Source of the DNA: Trichosphaerium sp. ATCC 40318
Taxonomy: Eukaryota > Protista > Tubulinea
Direction of reading: 5' to 3'
Assembly: GCA_038496445.1 (NCBI GenBank)
Contig: JALMLS010000502.1
Coordinates: 78,939 to 142,938, forward strand
DNA: 64,000 nt
Below the pieces are notes generated by a model. It was not told the DNA's origin and made no database searches. It was given only the letters and a program-made list of their open reading frames with translations. The first letter of the stretch is position 1. Each line of letters opens with the position of its first letter. Made by a program: the position numbers and the translations under genes. Shown here one piece after another: positions 1 to 13,346 of the stretch.

Positions 1-644
1 GCTACTTTTATGGTGTACCTTGGCTTTGGGCTATTTCAGTTCTAATTATGTAAATATCCTTGCGTCTGTCACTCCTTTATGATAAAGACATAAGCAAAGA
101 ACAGTGATATCAACACAACACTTTGAAATGGAAGCATACCACTCCAATCCAAAATGTGCTGATTTTTTCGAGATTCGATCTTCAAACATTTTGTTTTTTA
201 TTTAAATCTTCTTAAACACTAGTTATTTGTGCTCAGGAATTCCTTTTTTCTGTGTACACAATCACAATTATTAACTCCGAGATTTCTTTATACAGCAATA
301 AACACTACAAACCACGACGATATTAACAAAGGACGAAGAGAATAAGTTGAATACCTTTCTCCTACAGAAAACAAAGCAAATGTTAGGCTTTCATGATTGA
401 TATTATCACGTTTATGAGTCAATGAATATGTAACCAAATGTACACTATCAGCAGCGCACAAGATAACCTAGGATCAGCGAAGCTCAAGCGAGCCAGTGCC
501 CTTGAGTTACTACAGCTGCCAAAGTAGTTTGCATAACTGGATACAAAGCTACATTTATTAATAGGTGCTATTTTAATTCTCAAACAGCAGCCATTGTGAG
601 TGGTATACATTCACCAATACGACGAAGACATGTTGGTTCTATAA

Positions 645-3600
645 GAGAATTTTTTGCTAAGTAGTTGATTATTTTAAAATAATTCAATTTCACATCACAG
701 CTTAATCTCACCAAACCAAAAGTTATATATGTTGTGGCATATATATACAAGTTTATAGGACTCGACTATCAAACACTTCTGAATAGGACAAAGATAGTAA
801 TTGTACAAATATAGACTTTTATTGTAAAAAAAATGTAGTTTTTTTCTTTATTTACGGAATATACTCCTTTTGTCCATCCTCAATCGGCTCATCTTGTGCT
901 AGGTGTATATAACTAGTTCCCCTAGAGCGTATTCTACGTTTTGGATTTCTTCTTTGTTTGTCTCTCTTAGTATTCCATCCATCTTTTTTTGTTGGTTTGG
1001 GACTGTTATAACTGAGTTGTATCCTCTTGTCCTCAAGCACCAACTCAGAACCATAACGCATGGCTACCGTCACAGGCAAAAATCGGATAGGATCACGTCT
1101 ACAACCCCCACAATTGTGGTTACATGTTCTGTTTGGGCCTTTAGGATCACAACTATATTTAACAGAAAATTAGTACTCGCATTTGTTTTTTGCTAACGCA
1201 CGTGTGTTCACAGTCATCAAAACCATTTTCTGGTATGCCATAGCTAAATTGAAATGCATTTCGCATAAATGTATCACCAATAGGTTCAGCTGGTTCGAGA
1301 ACAGGAAAATCATTCACCATGGCTTCTAACATGTACGTATTTTTGAGAGTACGACAAGCATATGCAAGGTGCGACAGTTCACTCAGTACAAAGAAATTTC
1401 GTATGTACTTATTTTGTAGCTTTTTAGAGCTTGCTGCGGAACCATCAGCTCTGTTGTGAGCACGAAGTGGTGCCAAAAACCGCCATATAATATTGGCTCC
1501 TGGATCACGTGTTTTTAAGCGCTGTTGAATATTGGCAACAACAGCATGTATAGGGTATGTTTTAAAATGTTTGCCACATCCATCTGACCTGTAAAGGGTT
1601 AGTTGCTGAATAAAGAGAAAATGAAACAACAAAAAAGGTACGTGCCATAGAATAATTTCTTTGAACAGGTCAAAGAACTTATGTTGGTATAGAAGCTCTA
1701 GAACCCACTGTACATAGTCAGCAGTTTGTTTTACCTTTTTATTCTTTTGTTCTTTTTTAACAGTGAAGTGTAAGTATGTAACACAAGGTTTGTATGTTGA
1801 GCGGTTAATAGATGGAATACTTTTCAATTGTGGAGTTGGTTTAGCGTCTTGTTTAAGCTTTTGTGTGTGTGACATTCGTCGTTTCTTAGGGTTTTTTGCT
1901 TGATCTCTTTCCATCTCTTTCTTAGTGCGTCTTTTTCTTTTCTTTTTTTGAGGTTTGTCGAGAGTTATATTTGATGTTGATGGTGGTTTTGTAGGTGACA
2001 CCATATACTTCTTCAATGTTTCTGGCAATTCTATTTTGTTCTTCGTTGCTAAAACCAAGACAAGGATAATGTAGTTAGTTTCCATGTTAGTTTGAGAAGC
2101 TGTAAAATCTAGCGTGATAACACCTCTATCAGGTTTTGCTTCAAGATCAAGGTGATCCTTTACATACTCATATATCCTAGCACGTGCAAACTCATCTATT
2201 GTTTTTAGGTTGGCTATTTCTTTTCGTAGCTTTTGTAGACTTTCCTCAGGTATGCCACTAGTCACCTTTTCATTCAACTCTGTTACCTTTTCTTGAAGCT
2301 TAATAGCTTCCTTAGATTCAAATTTATCACCCTCTCTGACTTGAATTTGTTCGGCATCTACAAAACGCTCAAACACTGGCCTGCTCACTGTGTCAAGACC
2401 TTGTTCTTCTGCCCATGCACAATATGTTAGATACATTGCTTCTTTTGTGCCTCTAAAACGCCGATTTGTACTACCTAAATGGTTTTGTTAATAAACACAT
2501 TTTTATTTTAGCCAAAATTGGTGGACTATTTCAACGTGTACTTACCCGATGGAACAACACAATTCATCTCAAGCCATTCCAAAATTGTATTCCCCTTATT
2601 TCCTAGTTTGTCCCTTCTGAACCCAAGGTCTCGTAGAAAGTAATCAAGAGGTGGACAGCTTCTAATATTTTGTCTGGCTTTGTTTACTGCTTGAGTTGTT
2701 TGGCTGATCATCTTAGCTGTATTCTCTGATATAATCAGCACCAAAAGGTAGTCACAATTACGTACTATCATCAATGCCATCAAAGAAGGAGAGCAATGCA
2801 CTTTTACGAACTGGTGAGTTCTTTGAAAGACTCAAATACAGTTGTATTACTCTGTCGACAACAATTTTATTCCTCAGTGCCTTTGTTGGTGATTGAGATG
2901 GATCTGAATACCTTTTTCTATATGCATTAACCAGCTTTGGATCTCTTTGAGCAAGTAGATGGTCAACATAAGTTATTATTTCTTTGTGTAAAGCATCCAA
3001 TTTTCTACGAAAAAATTAGTTGTTTGGATTTTTATGTAAAAAGTGTCAATACCTTTTGCGTTGCTGATGTGTCCGCAGTGCTTCAAATTGTACTACAGGT
3101 CTACCTGGGTTACGCTAAATGCTAAATAAGAATGACATTTTGGCGCTTTTTTTTAGTTGATTGGCGAAAAACTTGAAACCAGAGGCCCCACCGCCAAGGC
3201 CTGCTTTGAAAAGTTGTACACACGTGTAATTAAGCCACAGCTTTGTATACGCAGCTTCAAAAAAGCAGGCGGTTTCGGTCTACCATACCTTTAGCTCATT
3301 TGCATTTTTTTTTCGGCATGTATTGCAAGCAAAGCTGCCCGTAGCGTTTTCTACGCGTGCTAAAACGCATGGCGAGTATCCAATGAAGTATTCACCTTCT
3401 ATTTTGTTTAACCTGTTTTCTCCTGACTCCCTATGCTTTTTTTTATCGCAGCACACGCAAATAAACCAAATCCTTTCACTTGGATTGCGTTGCATCTGTT
3501 GTTGACCAGTAATATGCAAAACTTTCCAAAACCAGAAAAAAACTCGTCAAAAATAGTATTTAATTTTTTTACGCATTTGAGGTACACTTTAACCACAGAA

Positions 3601-3671
3601 ACTTTCTGTGCATGTTTTACACGCATAAATCGTTCCATTGAGAGGTATCAACTGCTTAGCAAAAAGTTCTC
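645..3671 (-). mobile_element. Cut-and-paste DNA transposon (Sola-like DDD transposase), 3,027 bp, inserted in the last exon of RTX-like gene copy A
   Basis: Left TIR 645-669 GAGAATTTTTTGCTAAGTAGTTGAT matches the reverse complement of 3647-3671 (GAGAACTTTTTGCTAAGCAGTTGAT) at 23/25. Flanked by AA (643-644) and AA (3672-3673). Removing the element plus one AA restores ...TCPPVIEPTCLRRIGECIP, collinear with the intact paralogue at about 9030-9090. Confidence 0.92.
852..3495 (-). CDS. Transposase, multi-exon, with putative DDD triad; 3' end possibly frameshifted
   Basis: Exons join ORFs 3280-3519, 2758-3000, 2526-2801, 1159-2436 and 852-1079. Motifs ITLDF, W-SDGCGKHFK (after removing intron 1589-1645) and WRFLAPLRAHNRADG. 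N-terminal Cys cluster (CVCC...CNTC) and a GRPVVQFEALRTHQQRKR segment. Lies wholly inside the TIRs. Confidence 0.78.
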
Positions 3672-6119
3672 AACAGGTGGACATGTTTCATCTTCACAAT
3701 TGAATACTTCAAAAACAGAAGGATCTGCACGAGAACAGCAACTACAAAGTAAATCTAATCAGAAAACGAACTGTATCAAGAAAAACTGGTACCTGTCATT
3801 GGGATCGTCAGCTCCACCACCATTTATTCTTCCATTAGTTATACCCATGTTTTGAGTAAGGCTTTCAACAAGGATTCTATCAGCTCCGTCATCACCATTG
3901 ACAGCATTCCGATTTGTTGAGTCAGGTTCTACAGTAAATATTAAACCGCTAAAACATCTCAAGTAGTTTCGTACGTATTGTGACTTCTGATACAATCATT
4001 ACATCATCACCGTTATTACCTCTCATAGCTACCATCAAAGAACACCTAGCATACATGACATCATTCTCACTCCCGCCTTAAACAGGTAAGATGAAATACT
4101 TTTATAGAATCAAAGGTTTGTTACCTTCAATATCGAGAACGTCACTGGAGAGAACCTCAACACAATCAGTACCAGTAGCTCCAATAACATTTCCCATGGC
4201 TGTTGGAATACCGTTGAATGAAGTTACTTTTATACAATCGTTCCCAGAAGCTCCATTCGCCCTTTTTGATCACTAAGTACACAACTACAACCTTTTTAAA
4301 CCCGTACTGTGCTCTCACAAACATCATGGTTCCTCGCTTTTCCATCGCGTCCTTTACTTCCAGCTGTCGCAAAATACTTCCTTCAATTATTATATCGTCA
4401 TTTCCGTCATTTCCTAGAATATCTCCCGTAGTTGCTTGAGTCGCTCTTATACAATCATTATCTTTGCCTACATGTCAAATTAAAAATAGTGGATCTAAAA
4501 ATAGTTTGATTTCGGTTTTTCGAACTCACCTCCTATTGTACGTTCCTGTACTATTGCTCCATCGTTGATTATAATACAATCGTCTCCATCTCTACCATGT
4601 ATTTCATTTATGATTGCCCCTGAACCTCTTACAAGGATGCAATCATTGGCATTTGTTCCACGAATCTGTCCAGTTACAGCCGATTCTACAATCACACAAT
4701 TGCTGCCAATGTCGTCCAACCGCACTAATAGTCATCATTTATAACTGTACAAGATTGTTTACGAAACTGAAAGTAAAAAAAGTTCAGAGAATTAAATGTG
4801 CGACAACAAAAATATGGTAAAAAAAAAGATACCAAAAAAAAAAAAAAAGGTAAAAACGTCTGTTCACTTTTGCGCAAAAAGAACTTACCATCACCGTTAC
4901 CATCTGCGGTTGCCGTCATACAACCAGATTCAAAGTCGCAAGCACTACAAGCCATACACTCACAGTCGCATCCAGACGCTTCTGGTAAAGGTGGTTGAGC
5001 GTGGTACATGCTTAGAACTAATATTGGTTATTTACAAAAAGTTGGTGGTGTATAGATACAGATAGTAATCCATAGAATACAAGCCAAGTTTATTGTAGTT
5101 GTCATCTGTTCAGCTGTTGTAATGAGTGTGTTGTCTTTTGCTTTTGTGGTTTTCAAATCTCGGCGTAAAATTGTGAATCAATACCGGAGTGGGTGTGGCT
5201 ATAAATAAGGCGTCATTGGAACGTTTTACTTATAATCAAGAGCCTGTAGACTGGTATTGTTTGACTAATTTCGAAAATGCGGATTTCGACAAAGAATTCA
5301 AGCGGAGAGAGCTCTGTTTGCTTTCAGTCGGGTACAAATCACGCTGAAGGAATATTGTCTGCGTGAAGACTTTCGTTTAAAATTGGGACATTGTTATTTG
5401 GGCTAAGGACTTTTGTGATGAATACCTTTACGCCCACAGATACTACACAGCAAATACTACCTAAAAGTTTGTACAAGAACATAAAAATTATGAGTTTTCT
5501 TGTAGGGACTACGGCCTGTAAACCAGCCAATTACGTACCATTTCTTAGCGCAACAAAAGGGTTTAAGAGATCACAGGCACCTAGAAAACTCGAATTTTAT
5601 GCTCTTGTACAAAAACGTAACTGAAAAGTCGGCATTCACAACACTTCAAAAAACAGAATGTCTGTCGCATTCAAGTTTCTGCCTGATCAGTCAGATCTGA
5701 CGGATTTGACACTTCTGATAGGTCGTGCAGACTCACTTTTTAAATGTGATCTACCCTCACTTGTCTAGCAAATACGACCGTTTCAAGCCCACGTGATGTA
5801 ACAAACTGATACAGAAACTTTTCAAAAATAAATCGACACCTGGCGGCGTTTACGAAGCCTAAAGCAACGTTGATAGTGTATTGGAAGGTTTTGACACTAT
5901 TATACCTGCTTATGACTTTGAACGCTGCGAGAGTGCTTCCGTTAGCGTGGGATAGGCACCAGTGTTGGCGCTTGTGTAAAACACGTGCGTTAATGTTTTT
6001 TAATCAAACATATCCCAAATAGTGTTTGAGGCATTCATACCGCTTTCAGCAGTAATGAGATAGCATTGTAGGCCATCGAACCACTTAAATCCGCTTTTAG
6101 CTCTTTGAAGACTTTGATC

Positions 6120-6790
6120 GAAACTTGAATGAGACAGACAATATGCACGAGAACAAGTTAAAACAATTTAACCATTGGTATTAACATGGACAACAAGCTT
6201 AGCTCTACTTCTTCTAATCTAATGTCGTCACTGTTATCCCCTCTGCTAATTATTCCTATTGTTGATGCAGTACTGCAATTATTGCCAAGCTCCTGAAAAG
6301 ATACATACAAAGTTATCATCAAATATCATTCGTGAATGTTACCTTTGGTTTTTTTCCGCACCTGTCCATGTGTATTTTTCAAGATTGCTATTGAATAAAA
6401 TCACAATTGCTTTGAATGTCCTCCATTAACACTAAACATGCCTTAGCTTGAGAAAGGGTAGCACTTGATTCAAATCCTTTCAATAGACGTATTTTTAAAT
6501 CACGTGACACAAAAAAACAAAACTAGGTGAATAGAATGGTGTACTTTAAACAAAGCGCGAAATAACGTTCCAAAGCCATCATCGCTAGCTGTTACAGTCA
6601 TACAACCATTATGAAAATCGCAAGCACTACAAGCCATACACCCACATGCGCATCCAGACGCTTGAGTTAAAGGTGGTTGGGCGTGGTATATGCTTAGAAC
6701 TGACAATTGGGGGTAAGGGTGTTCAGTAATTTAAAAATTAGTCTCTAGATACAGATTGTAATCCACGGAAACAGATCACGTTCATTCACT
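6120..6790 (-). pseudogene. Degenerate, truncated RTX-like paralogue (copy B)
   Basis: Retains the YHAQPPLTQASGCACGCMACSACDF exon (6500-6706 ORF) and eroded remnants of later exons; frameshifted first exon. Confidence 0.75.
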
Positions 6791-6887
6791 ATTGTGCTAT
6801 AGGTAAACACAAAGAACTTTTAGTGTATTCACTGCGTCTTTAATAAACACTTTCTGTAGTATTAGTGCACTATTTCAGCTATAGCTA

Positions 6888-7892
6888 TTAATAATTTATT
6901 GCTACTGCGCTACCTTCTGGCATAGTTAGGTAGTCAGTATCTAAAATACAATTTACATTTTCAAATGAAACCTCGTTCATACTATCACAATCCATAAGCT
7001 CATCTGTTATCTCTTCAGGAACAAAAGAGTAAGGCAAAAAATCTACGTCACTTTGCACGTCTAAAACGCCACCATCTTCAAGGTTGTTATAATTACCAAG
7101 TTCGCAAGGGCTTAGAGGCTGTGAATACGAAAAATCAATGTCCATTAGATCAGGCTTAAAGAACATACTGACATCGTCATCGCAAGTACCTGTACCAACA
7201 TAAGAACAAGGTTCACTCGACAGTGAATCACTACAAGAAGCACTATCGTGATCGCTGTAAGAGTTTATGTATATGGGCGCCATAGGCCATGTATAGGGAG
7301 CCTTCCATCTCATAGAGTGTAAAGAGGATGGTAGCTGCTCATCTGTACCATTATAGACGGCATTGATAGAAACTGTTGTAAGTAATTCGTGTCCTTTGCA
7401 ATCTGAAGCTCTAAGTTTTTTTGTTGCACCAGGAGATAACCAATGAGTGTCGTCTGATGTTCTTTTAGGTTGTCCGGAGCCCCAGTTTCCTTTTTGTTCT
7501 TTCGGCGGCGGTCTTTCGCCACGTTCTCTTTTTCGGCGTTTTCTTGTCACACGCCCATTCGCTTTTTCAAGAATACCCTCCAGAGACCGTAACTCAGCTG
7601 TTGTAAAATTACACGGGACTTTTCCCGATGTTGTTGTTTTTGTTCGTTTTTTCAATAAACATGTCTTGTATAACGCTGTTAAGCGTTCCATACAGTCACG
7701 TAGGTCTACTTTTGCTTCTTCATAGTTTTTGTAGGACACGCTTTTTTTCTGCTTTTTCGTTGTTTGAGTTGTCACTAGTACACCGTCCTTGTAATGCATT
7801 TTTATAAGTATAGATTTATTGTCAACGAGATGTTGCACTTTAACAAATAAACCAAAAAACGAGATAAAACGACTCAATCTTGAACGCATCAT
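6888..7892 (-). CDS. Intronless hypothetical protein, basic N-terminal half (NLS-like RKRRKRER) and acidic C-terminal tail; possibly nuclear
   Basis: 334-aa uninterrupted ORF in AT-rich DNA; likely start is the Met at about 7799. No recognised domain. Confidence 0.6.
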   Translation of the reverse strand: MMRSRLSRFISFFGLFVKVQHLVDNKSILIKMHYKDGVLVTTQTTKKQKKSVSYKNYEEAKVDLRDCMERLTALYKTCLLKKRTKTTTSGKVPCNFTTAELRSLEGILEKANGRVTRKRRKRERGERPPPKEQKGNWGSGQPKRTSDDTHWLSPGATKKLRASDCKGHELLTTVSINAVYNGTDEQLPSSLHSMRWKAPYTWPMAPIYINSYSDHDSASCSDSLSSEPCSYVGTGTCDDDVSMFFKPDLMDIDFSYSQPLSPCELGNYNNLEDGGVLDVQSDVDFLPYSFVPEEITDELMDCDSMNEVSFENVNCILDTDYLTMPEGSAVAINY

Positions 7893-9018
7893 GTCATCAA
7901 ACGTTTTTGCGAAAATTGCGAGTTTTCTACGATTTTTCAGGATACTAAAACGCCCCTTGTGATTTTAAAAATGCAGATTGTTTTTACGCCATCACGGTTG
8001 CTTACAAGTCACTACGAGAGGGGTTTCTGAGTGAGATTTTTTGATTCAAAACAAGTCGTAATGACGTGTGTGCCCGTTTGATCTGTTCCCCAATTTAAAA
8101 CCAAAAAAGCCGTTAAATGATAGACGCATACCGTAGCATTATTAATGGCATAATTATTTCAGGAATGACGTGTTTTGTGAGTTCCACGGAACATTGTACA
8201 AATTCAGAAACTGGGAACCATCGCAAATGAGATATAAGGTTTCAAGCATACTTTAGGGCACTTCTAACGTAATCATACCAGCTCTTAATTTTAATTCCGA
8301 GTCTGCGTAATCTTTTTTACACTTAAAAAGCGCCGAAACGTATAAACGCGCATAGCAATTATACACTCTAAAAACGCTTTGTAGTTTTTTGGCAACTTTA
8401 TCTCATAACGGTAGTTTTGAGTCACTGAATAGTTTTTAGAAAAAAAAAACACCTCTAAGCTTTGCCGCAAGCACGCAAAAATATTAATTAGTGATTAACT
8501 AGACGTTTCGTATTCTTTAAAGAGTTTGTAGGGATATACAAATTAATACTCCTTAGTCTTGTTTCATATCCTTGTACCGCCTATTAGGGCTGTTACGAGA
8601 ACAAACGAAGGAAAACAATCAATTTCAATTCAAAATTTACAAAAAGTGCACGCGTTTAGCGTATAAGTATCACACAAGCACGTACGTAGTTGAGAAAAAA
8701 ATAATGCAAAGCTTTAAACAACTTTACACACAACGTCGCGGTAAACCTATCATTGAGTGAGCGAGGAATCACTTTATTAGGTCTACAGGAGAAATAACCT
8801 TTCCGGAGTACACCAAGCGTATTTCGCCTGCTACAAACCGTGACATTTATCACTACAACGCGATAAATCAATTCTTACAACCTAGGATCTTATAACTTTC
8901 GTTTGACGTGTAAAAAAACTACTCTCCCAAAATCTCTATGTCATTTCAGTCGTGGTTTCTAACTCGAAGATTTTGATGGGTTGATCTAGTTTTTAATACA
9001 ACTTGTTATCATTTATTC

Positions 9019-10479
9019 TCAAGCCATGAATGGTATACATTCACCAATACGACGAGTACATGTTGGTTCTATAATAGGTGGACATGTTTCATCTTCACAA
9101 TTGAATACTTCAAAATCAGAAGGATCTACACGAGAACAGCAACTAAAATTTGTAAGTCTAAATCAGAAAAAACAAGTTGAAACAATTTTTGTATATAGAC
9201 CTGTCATTATCGATGCCAACTCCACCAGTTATTCGTCCACTACTTACACTGTTTTGAGTCAGGCTTTCAACAAGAATTCTATCATCTCCAGAACCACCAT
9301 TGACAGCATTCCGACGTCTAATAACTGCTAAAGTGAGTTGTCAGTTACACAAGTGTAAATCTTAAAATAATCTCAAATTTTGGGGATTTTTTTACGTATT
9401 GTGACTTCTGATACAATCATTACATCATCACCACCATCTCCTTCCATAGTGTCCATCAAAGAACAACTGGCATATATATGATCGTTCCCATTACCCCCTT
9501 AGTATGATAAGATTACATGTCATGTACTGTTGAAGAAAATCAAAAAAAGCAAAACAAGTACCTGAAATAGCGAGTACGTCACTAGTTTGAACATCAACAC
9601 AATCATCATCACCACCTCCATTAACATCTCCTGTAAATGGTTGAGCACCATTAAATGGAGACAATCTAATACAATCATTCCCATCGTCTCCATTTATTGA
9701 AGTCCTTTAAAAAGAATGAACAAACACAAATCCAACTTTTATATATCTTTTCTTACCGCACTGTCATTCCTCGTTTGTTGCGAACAAACGAAACAGTGCT
9801 CCCTTCAACTAGTATATCATCATTTCCACTTCCTCCTTCAAGTAGAAAGGCATTCGATGTAGTTACTCTTACACAATCATTATTATCTCCTACACAAGGC
9901 AATGTTAGTAGTTTTACAGCACTAAGTTTTTATTTGCCTGCATCTATAGCTCCAGCCATTGCTCCATCTGTTGCAATAATACAATCATCTCCACCTCTAC
10001 CATTTATTCCTAAATTTATACTGGAACCTCTTACAAGTATGCAATCATTGTTATCTGTTCCACTAATCTCTCCAGGTACATCTGATTCTACAATCACGCA
10101 ATTGCTACCAATATCATCAAGCTCCACTAGCAATTTTATAGTTAGCGAGCTCAGAAAAGAGCGTTTGGTAAGCTAGAGATACTTGCGTTACAATAAATTT
10201 TCAAGAGCACGTGATGAAAACGTTACGAATTGAACAATTTGACAAAGAACTTACCATCGCCGTTGCCATCTGCGGTTACAGTCACACAATTATCACTTTG
10301 AAAATCGCAAGCACTACAAGCCATACAATTGCAGTCGCATCTACGAACTCGAGGTAAAGGTGGTTGAGCGTGGTACATGCTTGGAACTAACAATTGAGGT
10401 TAGGTTATCATTATTTACTTTATAATCGGTTGATACATGTTGTAATCCATAGAATAAAAATCACGTGTATTGCCTTCAT
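9019..10479 (-). CDS. RTX-like Ca-binding repeat secreted protein, copy C
   Basis: MKAIHVIFILWIT.. signal, Cys-rich N-cap, repeats GTDNNDCI, GRGGDDCI, GDDGNDCI, C-terminal CPPIIEPTCTRRIGECIP; about 8 exons with GT-AG introns. Confidence 0.85.
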
Positions 10480-11865
10480 ATTTGCTTCAGCTGTTGTAAT
10501 GTCTGTTGTGCGATTTTGTGGTTTTATCAACTCTGAAATTTAGTGATTGTGAATCCAAAACCGTGAGTGTTGTAGGCTTGTGTTCTTACCTTATATGTTA
10601 CAAAATGGAGCGTTTACTTGTATAATTTACTATGAAGGTAGATTTCATAGTTTATCCGCTAATAATTATTTCCCCGATAGATCTGGCGGGTTCATAAGAA
10701 AAAACTCCCGGTTCATAAGAATTTCAACTTTTTTCAACGCAACCATACACACAGCAGTCAACTTTTAATTGTTTGTTTCTTTTTTACAGGTATGGGAATC
10801 ATGCTCAATATTCTATACAAACAGCAAAATCTCATATTGAAGCATTTGATAGGCCAGGACATGACGAAATTCACAGCGTCCACATTTTTCTGGTTTTTTT
10901 AGCAGTGTCCATGAATTGATCACGCACCACCTGAGATAATACAAAATAACGTGATATGGTTGGTGTATATGCAAGTGACGTAGAGTGTACAATACAAGAC
11001 CCCATTGAGAATATCAATGTCATTAAAATGAGTGACATACATTTCCCAACGTACTGAAATTTGAGAGTTTGGTAGTAATGCACTTGTAGTCATTGTAAGA
11101 CTCTAAAATGTCTACAAGATAAGTGCTAGGGCAATAAAATAGATGTGGCTTCAGTTATGGATCTTTGGAGTTGTCACATACTACACATGCAGTGACACGC
11201 AAAATTCAAGCAACCGGGCAGACACTTAAATACGTACCCTTTGTGTTGAATCCAACGTTGCGCCATTAATTGGTCGTTTTGAAACTTTCGCTACTAAAAT
11301 CGTTGGTACGATAAACGAAGTTGTAGAAGATCCTTTATGAATTGTAACGCGTGATTAAGTTGTGTACAAGCTTGTTAAACCAGAAAATGTTGTAATGTAC
11401 ACTAAATGACACGCCATGACAAACTACGTACTGTTTTTATGCCATGTGATTAAGTTGTATGAATGGGGATATTAAGGCTAGGATCTCGGCAGTAGATGAG
11501 TACATTGATAAATTACTACACCAATTTTTCAAGCGCTACGGCGCTCACTTGTTACGATTTAAATACGCTGGTACTTTAAAAAGTTCCAGGCCCAACCAAA
11601 CGAGTACGAAGCTATATATTCGATTGGATTCGCCGCCCTGTTGTGAACAAGAAGCTGAATACAAAGGTAGTGGTTGAATTGTCTTTTTTTTTTTTTTTGA
11701 AAAGTGTTGTTTGATGTTACCACTTGGCGTCACATGCCAACATGTTGTAAAGAGTTCCTCGAGTACTACAATCTAGACGTAGTAAAACAGTTTTTGTGAC
11801 TAACTTTAAGTGTTTACCAAAGATACTCTACAGCCATCTGTAATAGAAGTTGGTTACATTTATTC

Positions 11866-13346
11866 TCAAGGTCTGGTAGCCACGAATGGTATACATTCAC
11901 CAATACGACGATGGCAAGTTGATACTCTAATAGGTGGACATGTCTCATCTTCACAATCGATTACTTCAAAAACAGAAGGGTTTGCACGAGAACAGCAACT
12001 ACATTTAAACAACAAAGATCAGAAAAGAATAAACTATTTTTTTGTATGTACCTGTCATTAGGATCAGCTCCACCACCAGTTATTCGTCTATTAGTACTAC
12101 CTGTTTGATCTAGGCTTTCAACAAGAATTCTATCACCTCCAGCACCACCATTGACAACATTCCGCTTAACAGGGAATGCAAATCCTAAGCGGAAATCTTA
12201 GCTACAATATCATCTCAAGTTATTTCGTACGTATTGTGACTTCTGATACAATCATTACATCATCACCATCACCTCCATTCATGTTTGTCATTGAAGAACA
12301 ACTGGCATACATATGATCGTTCCCATTGCCCCCTTAGATGATAAGATAAATGAAATGTCAAAGTTGATAGTATTGTAAAATACCTAAAATAGCAGATACG
12401 TCACTAGTTTGAACATCAACACAATCATCATCACCACCTCCATTAACATCTCCTGTAAATGGTTGAGCACCATTAAATGGAGTCAATTTAATACAATCAT
12501 TCCCAGCTTCTCCATTTATTGAAGTCCTCATGAAAGTACTGTAAACTGAATTAAAACAGCTTCCAACATTAACGTATCTTACGGAGACGTCATTCCCGGG
12601 CTGGGACCCTCAATCTGTATAACGCTCCCTTCAACTATTATGTCATCATTTCCATTGCCTCCTTGAATATCTGAAGCTGTTGATGCAGTGACTCTTACAC
12701 AATCATTATCATCTCCTGAACAACTGTCAAATTTAGAGATCCATGTCAACACTGTCTGTTTTACCTGCGTTTGTTATTCCCAAAACTGTTGCTTTATCCT
12801 GTATAATAATGCAATCATCTCCATTTCTACCATTGATATCTCCTACCCTTACACCTACACCTCTTACAAGTATACAATCATTGTCATTTGTTCCAGTAAT
12901 CTCATTAAGCACATTTGATTGTACAATCACGCAATTACTATCAATGTCATCCATTGACACTACAAAACTGATGATAAGCTCCAAAATGAACCGACGGAAA
13001 AAAATAACACTTAATGGATGCTGACAATAATAGCACATGGCATTTCAAAATTCTTTGAGAAGCTCTCACGTGGTAACAGATTAGTACAATGACTACAAAA
13101 CAGCAAATAAAGAACGCACCAATTCCATCACCGTTTGCAGTTACAGTCACACAACTATTTAGAAAATTGCAAGCACTACAAGCCATACACCCACAATCGC
13201 ATCCACGTACTTGCGGTAAAGGTGGTTGAGCGTGGTACATGCTCAGAACTAACAAATTGTTGTCAGGTTATCATTATTTACTTTAAAATTAGTCTCTGGA
13301 TACAGATTGTAATCCATAGAATATAAATCACGTTTATTGTATTCAT
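11866..13346 (-). CDS. RTX-like Ca-binding repeat secreted protein, copy D
   Basis: Same exon structure; GTNDNDCI, GRNGDDCI, GEAGNDCI repeats; ends ..CIPFVATRP*. Confidence 0.85.

Follow-up and report, generated by a model that had tools for sequence, protein, structure and literature searches.

The question raised by this locus is how a transposon whose ends and catalytic motifs recall those of Sola2 elements comes to be flanked by a target site duplication (TSD) of 2 bp. The window analysed is the whole 64,000-nucleotide stretch of contig JALMLS010000502.1 (positions 78,939 to 142,938 of the forward strand) in assembly GCA_038496445.1 of Trichosphaerium sp. ATCC 40318, and it contains a DNA transposon of 3,027 bp at positions 645-3671. 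Sola elements are described as having D-D-D transposases and as being flanked by 4-bp duplications (PMC10741241), with the sequence AWWT in Sola1 (PMC3845634) and an AT-rich 4 bp in Sola2 (PMC3627910). The element in the window probably represents a Sola2-related lineage, in which the Sola2-type G(A/G)G ends are kept and a 2-bp TA target is used instead of the 4 bp of Sola. The features defining the element and its insertion site, in window coordinates, are as follows.

645 to 3671, minus strand: whole autonomous element; five copies with the same ends at 98-100% identity, transposase gene on the minus strand
645 to 669, plus strand: left terminal inverted repeat, starting GAG; 23 of 25 positions complementary, 64 genomic matches against 0 for the control
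3647 to 3671, minus strand: right terminal inverted repeat, ending CTC; pairing of the ends and genomic end search
643 to 644, no strand: left copy of the TSD, AA; overlap with the paralogue of 2 bp
3672 to 3673, no strand: right copy of the TSD, AA; overlap with the paralogue and reading of the flanks
9067 to 9081, no strand: corresponding 'empty' site, free of the insertion, in the adjacent paralogue; flank alignment, genome BLAST and frame check

The terminal inverted repeats (TIRs) are 25 nt each, pair at 23 of 25 positions and have the form GAG...CTC. The element that they bound lies in the Cys-rich last exon, a coding exon, of a gene belonging to a tandem family, and disrupts this gene. 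The flanks of the element can be aligned with the neighbouring paralogue at 92-95% identity, 597-644 corresponding to 9027-9077 and 3672-3747 to 9073-9148. In a BLAST search of the genome, the match to the left flank stops at C164:88012 and the match to the right flank begins at C164:88011; the two overlap by exactly 2 bp, the AA at C164:88011-88012 (window 9073-9074). When the empty site is rebuilt on the minus strand it reads CCA CCT GTT ATA GAA, encoding PPVIE, while the paralogue encodes PPIIE over an equal length with the reading frame kept. This preservation of both length and frame excludes a deletion in the flanks at the window site, and the T/C difference beside the element is a codon difference between the paralogues, not the scar of a deletion. 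Both the 25-bp GAG...CTC TIRs and the AA duplication had been put forward in the original prediction, which was made from the window alone, and both are upheld by these comparisons.

The distribution of the element was studied across the 70.3-Mb eukaryotic assembly (642 contigs), using the 25-nt end with up to three mismatches as the query and the reversed pattern as a control. The end is found at 64 genomic sites and the reversed pattern at none. The genome search recovered five copies of the 3-kb element at 98-100% identity. One of these, on C357, differs from the copy in the window by 11 substitutions in 3,027 bases, with no indel; in the copies on C168 and C312, deletions have disrupted the frame or taken out the SDGC codons, and the copy on C269 is truncated. 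The family has been recently active, as indicated by the similarity of the window and C357 copies and by the disruption of a member of the tandem gene family by one copy. The gene looks intact in these two near-identical copies, which suggests that they may still be active.

After reading of the flanks, the 64 ends could be paired into 26 distinct complete elements, comprising four of ~3.0 kb, two of intermediate length (1.9 kb and 1.25 kb) and 20 of 0.73-0.83 kb. The approximately 22 short derivatives (0.73-1.9 kb, mostly ~0.8 kb) are non-coding and have only the ~25-nt ends in common with the 3-kb element; they are non-autonomous families resembling MITEs (miniature inverted-repeat transposable elements). 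The dinucleotides to the left and right of the complete elements are distributed as follows.

TA/TA: 21 of 26 complete copies
AA/AA: 2 of 26 complete copies
AT/AT: 1 of 26 complete copies
TG/TG: 1 of 26 complete copies
AT/AA, imperfect: 1 of 26 complete copies

A perfect 2-bp duplication is thus present at 25 of the 26 complete copies; none of them has a 4-bp duplication, the match never reaching the third or fourth base. Because the AA/AA and TG/TG flanks are direct, not inverted, the flanking dinucleotides are duplications lying outside the TIRs. Duplications of 3, 4 and 8 bp, as well as an arrangement with TA within the inverted ends, were tried against this table and rejected. The same data bear on the proposal that the family is a typical Sola one that duplicates 4 bp, of which 2 bp have been lost at the window site. 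Prior expectation from the literature, and nothing else, speaks for such an event, which is refuted by the copy table and is at odds with the unchanged length and frame of the rebuilt empty site; it can be given almost no credence. The original prediction had allowed for 4-bp duplications at other copies, and there are none. Its reading of a 2-bp duplication stands, whereas the AA on which it was based proves to be a minority target, the TA consensus (21 of 26) having been missed.

A preference for TA extends beyond the window's family. A sister family represented at C37:174419-177138 (L156:2920-5639) has an intron-free open reading frame (ORF) of 631 aa, 39% identical to the window's frame, and ends reading GGGAC(T/G)ATTTTTG...; the C37 element is flanked by TA/TA. 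The pattern of the sister ends has 83 genomic matches against none for the control, many of which are paired ~1.32 kb apart, as would be produced by MITE-like derivatives, and all five of the distinct ends that were read abut TA. The metagenomic relative L069, the only one of the related loci retrieved to contain both ends of a close relative, shows 38% identity, a similar end (GACAACTTTTAGCTAAC...) and TA/TA flanks. The 2-bp duplication across the copies of the window's family, together with the TA of the sister family and L069, is therefore a lineage-wide trait.

Other members of the clade were also encountered. A distant family at five metagenome loci (L073, L075, L077, L086 and L087) has ends of the form (A)TGTTCAAGTCCCCCAGAAGC, and, with GTTC as the assumed start of the element, four of five copies have AT/AT flanks. 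As AT is a palindrome, it may be either a duplication or part of the end. Contig C530 contains a near-perfect (99.7%) inverted duplication, 1-6910 against 7808-14714, each arm of which carries a transposase belonging to this broad clade; this palindrome could be real or an artefact of assembly, and no usable flanks were found on the contig.

The protein that would be responsible for these insertions has no named relatives among the matches listed or looked up. A Pfam scan of all the ORF pieces of the element gave no family match, and scans of these pieces together with 35 family members returned only weak helix-turn-helix matches (HTH_23 and HTH_38, in some members). A word search identified 32 homologues of 260-740 aa in metagenomes and run assemblies, all without names or Pfam domains, and a profile built from 19 homologues matched 515 proteins at E <= 0.001 among 1.84 billion representatives; there were no names or Pfam families among the matches listed or looked up, and looking up the clusters yielded neither names nor accessions. 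Three alignments were studied: A1, the window's family (19 sequences); A2, a more distant group (16 sequences); and A3 (36 sequences). The word search with the A2 profile found seven proteins, none with a useful name. The invariant columns of A1 include LDFT..Q and SDGCGKHFKTY..H, as well as AHNRxD..AA in the sequences that reach that far, and those of A2 are CxxC, DF, DG and D. Comparison of A1 with A2 by hhalign gives a probability of 100% and an E value of 1.6e-40 over 365 columns, demonstrating homology between groups that are only distantly similar, the clade being internally deep with ~11-20% identity from group to group.

In all three alignments an aspartate is invariant at each of the three catalytic positions. 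This D-D-D triad agrees with the catalysis named in the original prediction. An RNase H fold is found in an AlphaFold model of the homologue P0001, built with 36 sequences. The model has a mean predicted local distance difference test score of 80.5, exceeding 90 in the core, and shows an RNase H core in the order beta1-beta2-beta3-alpha-beta4-alpha-beta5-alpha, with D317 on beta1, D465 after beta4 and D506 at the start of a helix. Foldseek against the PDB gave weak matches to RNase H folds, none below an E value of 0.018. In a wide structural search the retroviral integrase cores scored Z 9-10.6, followed by Mos1 (9.3-9.4), Metnase (8.9), Sleeping Beauty (8.2) and IstA (8.2), while P0001 residues 101-162 matched ParB-type helix-turn-helix domains. 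As modelled, the protein combines DNA-binding modules at its N-terminus with a compact D-D-D core of transposase or integrase type; its likeness to known structures lies in the fold only and does not favour one superfamily over another.

The Sola superfamily is defined by significant sequence similarity among Sola transposases. The paper defining it is reportedly that of Bao et al. 2009. Closer comparison is possible with two dictyostelid elements, Sola2_DFa-2 and Sola2_PPa-1, the transposases of which are printed in supplementary file 3 of Bao & Jurka 2013 (PMC3627910). That of DFa-2 contains ...TDTCPYCHLY..., followed ~60 aa on by VIVLMDFKEN, then by IFFWSDGAKHFKS and then by AQYHGKSDVDRHF, giving the blocks CPYC, VLMDFKEN, FFWSDGAKHFKS and YHGKSDVDRHF; the blocks of PPa-1 are CPMC, ILCDFKEN, FWCDNARHFKS and YHGKSECDQHF (PMC3627910). 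The consensus of A2 has CPxC, VVQDFTQ, IWSDGGPKHFK and NHGHSxCDAxAA in the same order as in Sola2 and with similar spacing. The window's family keeps the last three of these blocks (LDFTASQ, WSDGCGKHFKT and AHNRADG), lacks the CxxC and has gained a basic loop of ~100 aa. The common ground is thus a D-D-D transposase with hhhDF, W-SDG-xx-HFK-[ST] and, after a spacer of ~40 aa, H-x(3-5)-D in this order, to which the relative group A2 adds the upstream CxxC...H; the final block differs, being AHNRxD in the window's family and YHGKSxxD in Sola2.

The likeness to Sola2 extends to the DNA. DFa-2 starts with gagc and its 3' end is ...ggctc, after which comes the 4-bp duplication (PMC3627910). The GAG...CTC ends of the window element match these, and with the GGG...CCC of the sister family the ends in this lineage take the general form G(A/G)G...C(T/C)C. 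In both cases the elements have TIRs, are a few kb long and are found in protists. The point of departure is the duplication, 2 bp and mostly TA in the window's family as opposed to an AT-rich 4 bp (AWWT) in Sola. The Sola2-like motifs claimed by the original prediction are accordingly real at the level of motifs, when set against DFa-2, PPa-1 and the DFa-2 ends, and were matched by eye only. The window's family belongs to a large clade from uncultured eukaryotes, unnamed in the databases searched, whose closest described relatives, as judged from motifs and ends, appear to be Sola2 transposases.

It could instead be argued that this is an independent D-D-D lineage of superfamily rank, for which a 2-bp TA target is ancestral and the resemblance to Sola2 is no more than is generic to RNase H-fold transposases. 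The size and depth of the clade would suit such a status, with its 515 proteins and low group-to-group identity, as would the failure of 35 members to match any Pfam family or of the profiles to match PDB sequences, and the duplication length that defines Sola is not seen. A generic resemblance would not, however, lead one to expect four blocks in order that are close to those published for Sola2 (CxxC...H, hhhDF, WSDGxxKHFK[ST] and YHGxSxxD), nor G(A/G)G...C(T/C)C ends in common with Sola2 DFa-2. An independent lineage is consequently regarded as unlikely, while deserving more weight than the other alternatives, and a Sola2-related origin is preferred.

The target is mainly TA, which the original prediction missed and which makes the insertion signature resemble that of Tc1/mariner. 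The resemblance, closest to mariner-type members with a D-D-D triad, comprises the 2-bp TA duplication, short inverted ends, an N-terminal helix-turn-helix, a compact RNase H core that lacks an insertion domain, and abundant short derivatives similar to Stowaway-type MITEs. Placement in the IS630-Tc1-mariner group, as a member that has diverged to an extreme degree, would account for the TA target, the triad, the compact core and the N-terminal helix-turn-helix together, and it could draw on the structural scores of Mos1, Metnase and Sleeping Beauty, on the TA duplicated in 21 of the 26 copies, and on the weak HTH_23 and HTH_38 matches of some members. However, retroviral integrases score as highly or higher, such that the structural match indicates the fold alone. 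No sequence relationship is detectable in Pfam or PDB profiles: among the 35 family members there is no match at E <= 1 to DDE_1, DDE_3, Transposase_1, rve, DDE_Tnp_ISAZ013 or DUF7869, and at E <= 10 the A1 and A2 profiles retrieve none of the PDB entries for Mos1, Sleeping Beauty or Metnase by sequence. The motifs at the catalytic residues also differ, and the ends are GAG or GGG in the window and sister families. Furthermore, Tc1/mariner elements are described as inserting strictly at TA (PMC10741241), whereas about 20% of the targets here are not TA, with AA duplicated in two copies, AT in one, TG in one and an imperfect repeat in one. Membership of IS630-Tc1-mariner is therefore considered improbable. 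The original prediction had also entertained a place within a known superfamily with 2-bp duplications, and no match to Tc1/mariner, pogo, IS630, rve or any other transposase family was found in Pfam.

Two other assignments were considered. Retroviral and long terminal repeat-type integrase cores (rve), along with Ginger, provide the best structural matches (Z 9-10.6), and their motifs look alike too, 'DFT' marking the first D and 'SDGxxxF' the second; they differ in that the family has no rve match in Pfam, the third residue is D, not E, and the termini and the length of the TSD are dissimilar. A lead from a protein language model towards DUF7869 and ISAzo13 (DDE_Tnp_ISAZ013) was dropped, as hidden Markov models (HMMs) did not support it. 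Elements encoding DUF7869 do occur in the same genome, but at other loci, and the A1-A3 HMMs, run on a very small database, give their ORFs E values of only 0.003-0.45.

The transposase gene from which the window's frame derives lies on the minus strand and is split. A long frame at 1162-2487 (442 aa) encodes most of the catalytic domain, and tblastn with full-length homologues reveals additional coding pieces at 2862-2773, 2807-2541 and 1169-861. The start codon, the donor of exon 1 and the GT-AG splice sites were read by eye, so that the joins between exons are predictions. The putative structure is as follows.

3289 to 3495, minus strand: putative exon 1, with the zinc-finger-like motif CxCC...RVENA...CxxC; ORF, start codon and donor by eye
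3053 to 3114, minus strand: putative exon 2, with a basic GRP (AT-hook-like) stretch; frame, splice sites by eye
2766 to 3004, minus strand: putative exon 3, where the helix-turn-helix region begins; tblastn with P0001, P0004 and P0037 (2862-2773 and 2807-2541)
2546 to 2725, minus strand: putative exon 4, helix-turn-helix region, ending ...CVVPSG; tblastn (2747-2541) and alignment A1
1646 to 2474, minus strand: exon 5, encoding the coiled linker, LDFTASQ with the first catalytic D, a basic loop inserted in the core, and beta3/alpha1; ORF, homologues and tblastn
1589 to 1645, minus strand: in-frame GC-AG intron of 57 nt; homologues and the intron-free sister ORF
1181 to 1588, minus strand: exon 6, with the second D (SDGCGKHFKTY) and third D (AHNRADG); alignments and tblastn
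855 to 1152, minus strand: Cys/His-rich C-terminal region, read in a different frame; frame and tblastn match at 1169-861 to the P0001 and P0002 C-termini

The introns read by eye are 3115-3288, 3005-3052, 2726-2765 and 2475-2545. Removal of the 40-nt GT-AG intron at 2726-2765 restores the alignment with the homologues, and the intron at 2475-2545 is of 71 nt, also GT-AG. The N-terminal modules recur elsewhere: the C37 sister element (39% identical) has a CxxC...RVENA...CxxC motif upstream of its transposase ORF, and RGRP or RGRK is found in homologues at the position matching the GRP stretch of exon 2. Within the 442-aa frame, D127, encoded in exon 5, is invariant in 19 sequences. The same frame reads through 1589-1645 as the 19 residues HVPFLLFHFLFIQQLTLYR; this segment is taken to be an intron because all homologues join ...W straight to SDGCGKHFK and the sister ORF is gapped at exactly this point. 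Towards the 3' end, the coding pieces on either side of 1153-1180 would be connected by a 28-nt GC-AG intron or else by a frameshift common to all copies; no indel is seen among the copies in this region. The other introns of the gene are of 40-174 nt and GT-AG. The GC-AG intron at 1589-1645, and the possible one at 1153-1180, suggest that in the host introns are short and non-canonical donors frequent.

Several observations weigh against a Sola2-related origin. The hallmark 4-bp TSD of Sola is seen at none of the 26 copies, at the paralogous empty site (2 bp) or at L004 (~3 bp). The last of these, the C312 copy, is the one copy with flanks at odds with 2 bp; its paralogous empty site, on C41 (C41:251775), reads ...GTAAGTT..., where the filled site reads ...GTAAT[element]AAGTT... 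(empty GCTAGTAAGTTAAC; filled GCTAGTAAT[element]AAGTTAAC). A 3-bp AAG duplication with one substitution fits these sequences better than a duplication of 2 bp, so that 3-bp events may occasionally occur in the family. The link to Sola2 is a match of motifs by eye, and the window's family both lacks the CxxC of Sola2 and has the extra basic loop of ~100 aa in its core. The lead to DUF7869 from the protein language model was not borne out by HMMs. Finally, the exon joins are by-eye predictions, and a frameshift may account for the 3' junction at 1153-1180. A Sola2-related lineage is nevertheless held to be the probable source of the element. The wider proposal is offered more tentatively, as a possibility of somewhat less than even likelihood: a broad, unnamed eukaryotic D-D-D clade, with hundreds of members in uncultured protists, that had a Sola2-like ancestry and exchanged its 4-bp target for one of 2 bp, TA, so arriving at the Tc1/mariner-type signature independently.

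A mechanism can be proposed on this basis. The multi-exon gene on the minus strand would be expressed as a transposase of ~650-700 aa, its predicted layout consisting of a zinc-finger-like motif, an AT-hook-like GRP, a helix-turn-helix, a coiled linker and an RNase H-fold D-D-D domain (LDF..., SDGCGKHFK, AHNRxD). The zinc-finger, AT-hook and helix-turn-helix modules would bind the 25-nt GAG...CTC ends, and the element would be excised in a cut-and-paste reaction. Its 3' ends may then be joined to target DNA whose two strands have been cut with an offset of 2 nt, for the most part at TA, and repair of the gaps would duplicate the dinucleotide, giving TA in ~80% of insertions. The non-coding derivatives of 0.73-1.9 kb would be moved in trans by the same transposase.

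The disrupted host gene occupies window 3672-~5100, and its tandem paralogues start near 9073, 11929, 14058, 16604, 19571 and 22726; the family is present too on contigs C12, C91, C199, C200 and C204. These genes are intron-rich, with repeats of the GGxGNDxI/GxDGDDxI type and a Cys-rich C-terminal exon. The repeats look like RTX calcium-binding nonapeptides in sequence, which is unusual for a eukaryote. Other repeats lie beside copies of the element. In the flank of the C357 copy (L002:5266-5590) there is an interspersed repeat of ~325 bp with >35 copies at 85-100% identity, and in the flank of the C312 copy (L004:806-1170 and 659-804) a repeat of ~370 bp with a 140-bp companion, with >40 copies at 91-93% identity; these two short interspersed repeats are unrelated. 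Downstream of the C37 element (L156:7078-8238) is a repeat 1.16 kb long, present in at least 20 copies that are 91-97% identical.

The length of the TSD is treated as a hallmark of transposon superfamilies and is the main key by which non-coding derivatives are classified. At this locus, motifs and ends of Sola2 type go with the TA signature of Tc1/mariner. Because of that signature, pipelines based on TSDs would file the derivatives of both families as Tc1/mariner or Stowaway-type elements, putting at risk of mislabelling the element itself and the ~22 complete derivatives found, in addition to the 83 ends of the sister family. The 515 database proteins have neither a name nor a Pfam model, so a profile for the family would improve the annotation of protist genomes. 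If the Sola2 ancestry is correct, both the stagger and the target preference can change within a single lineage of transposases, and the relatives with 4-bp and 2-bp duplications would constitute a natural pair of enzymes in which to find the structural determinant of stagger and target choice.

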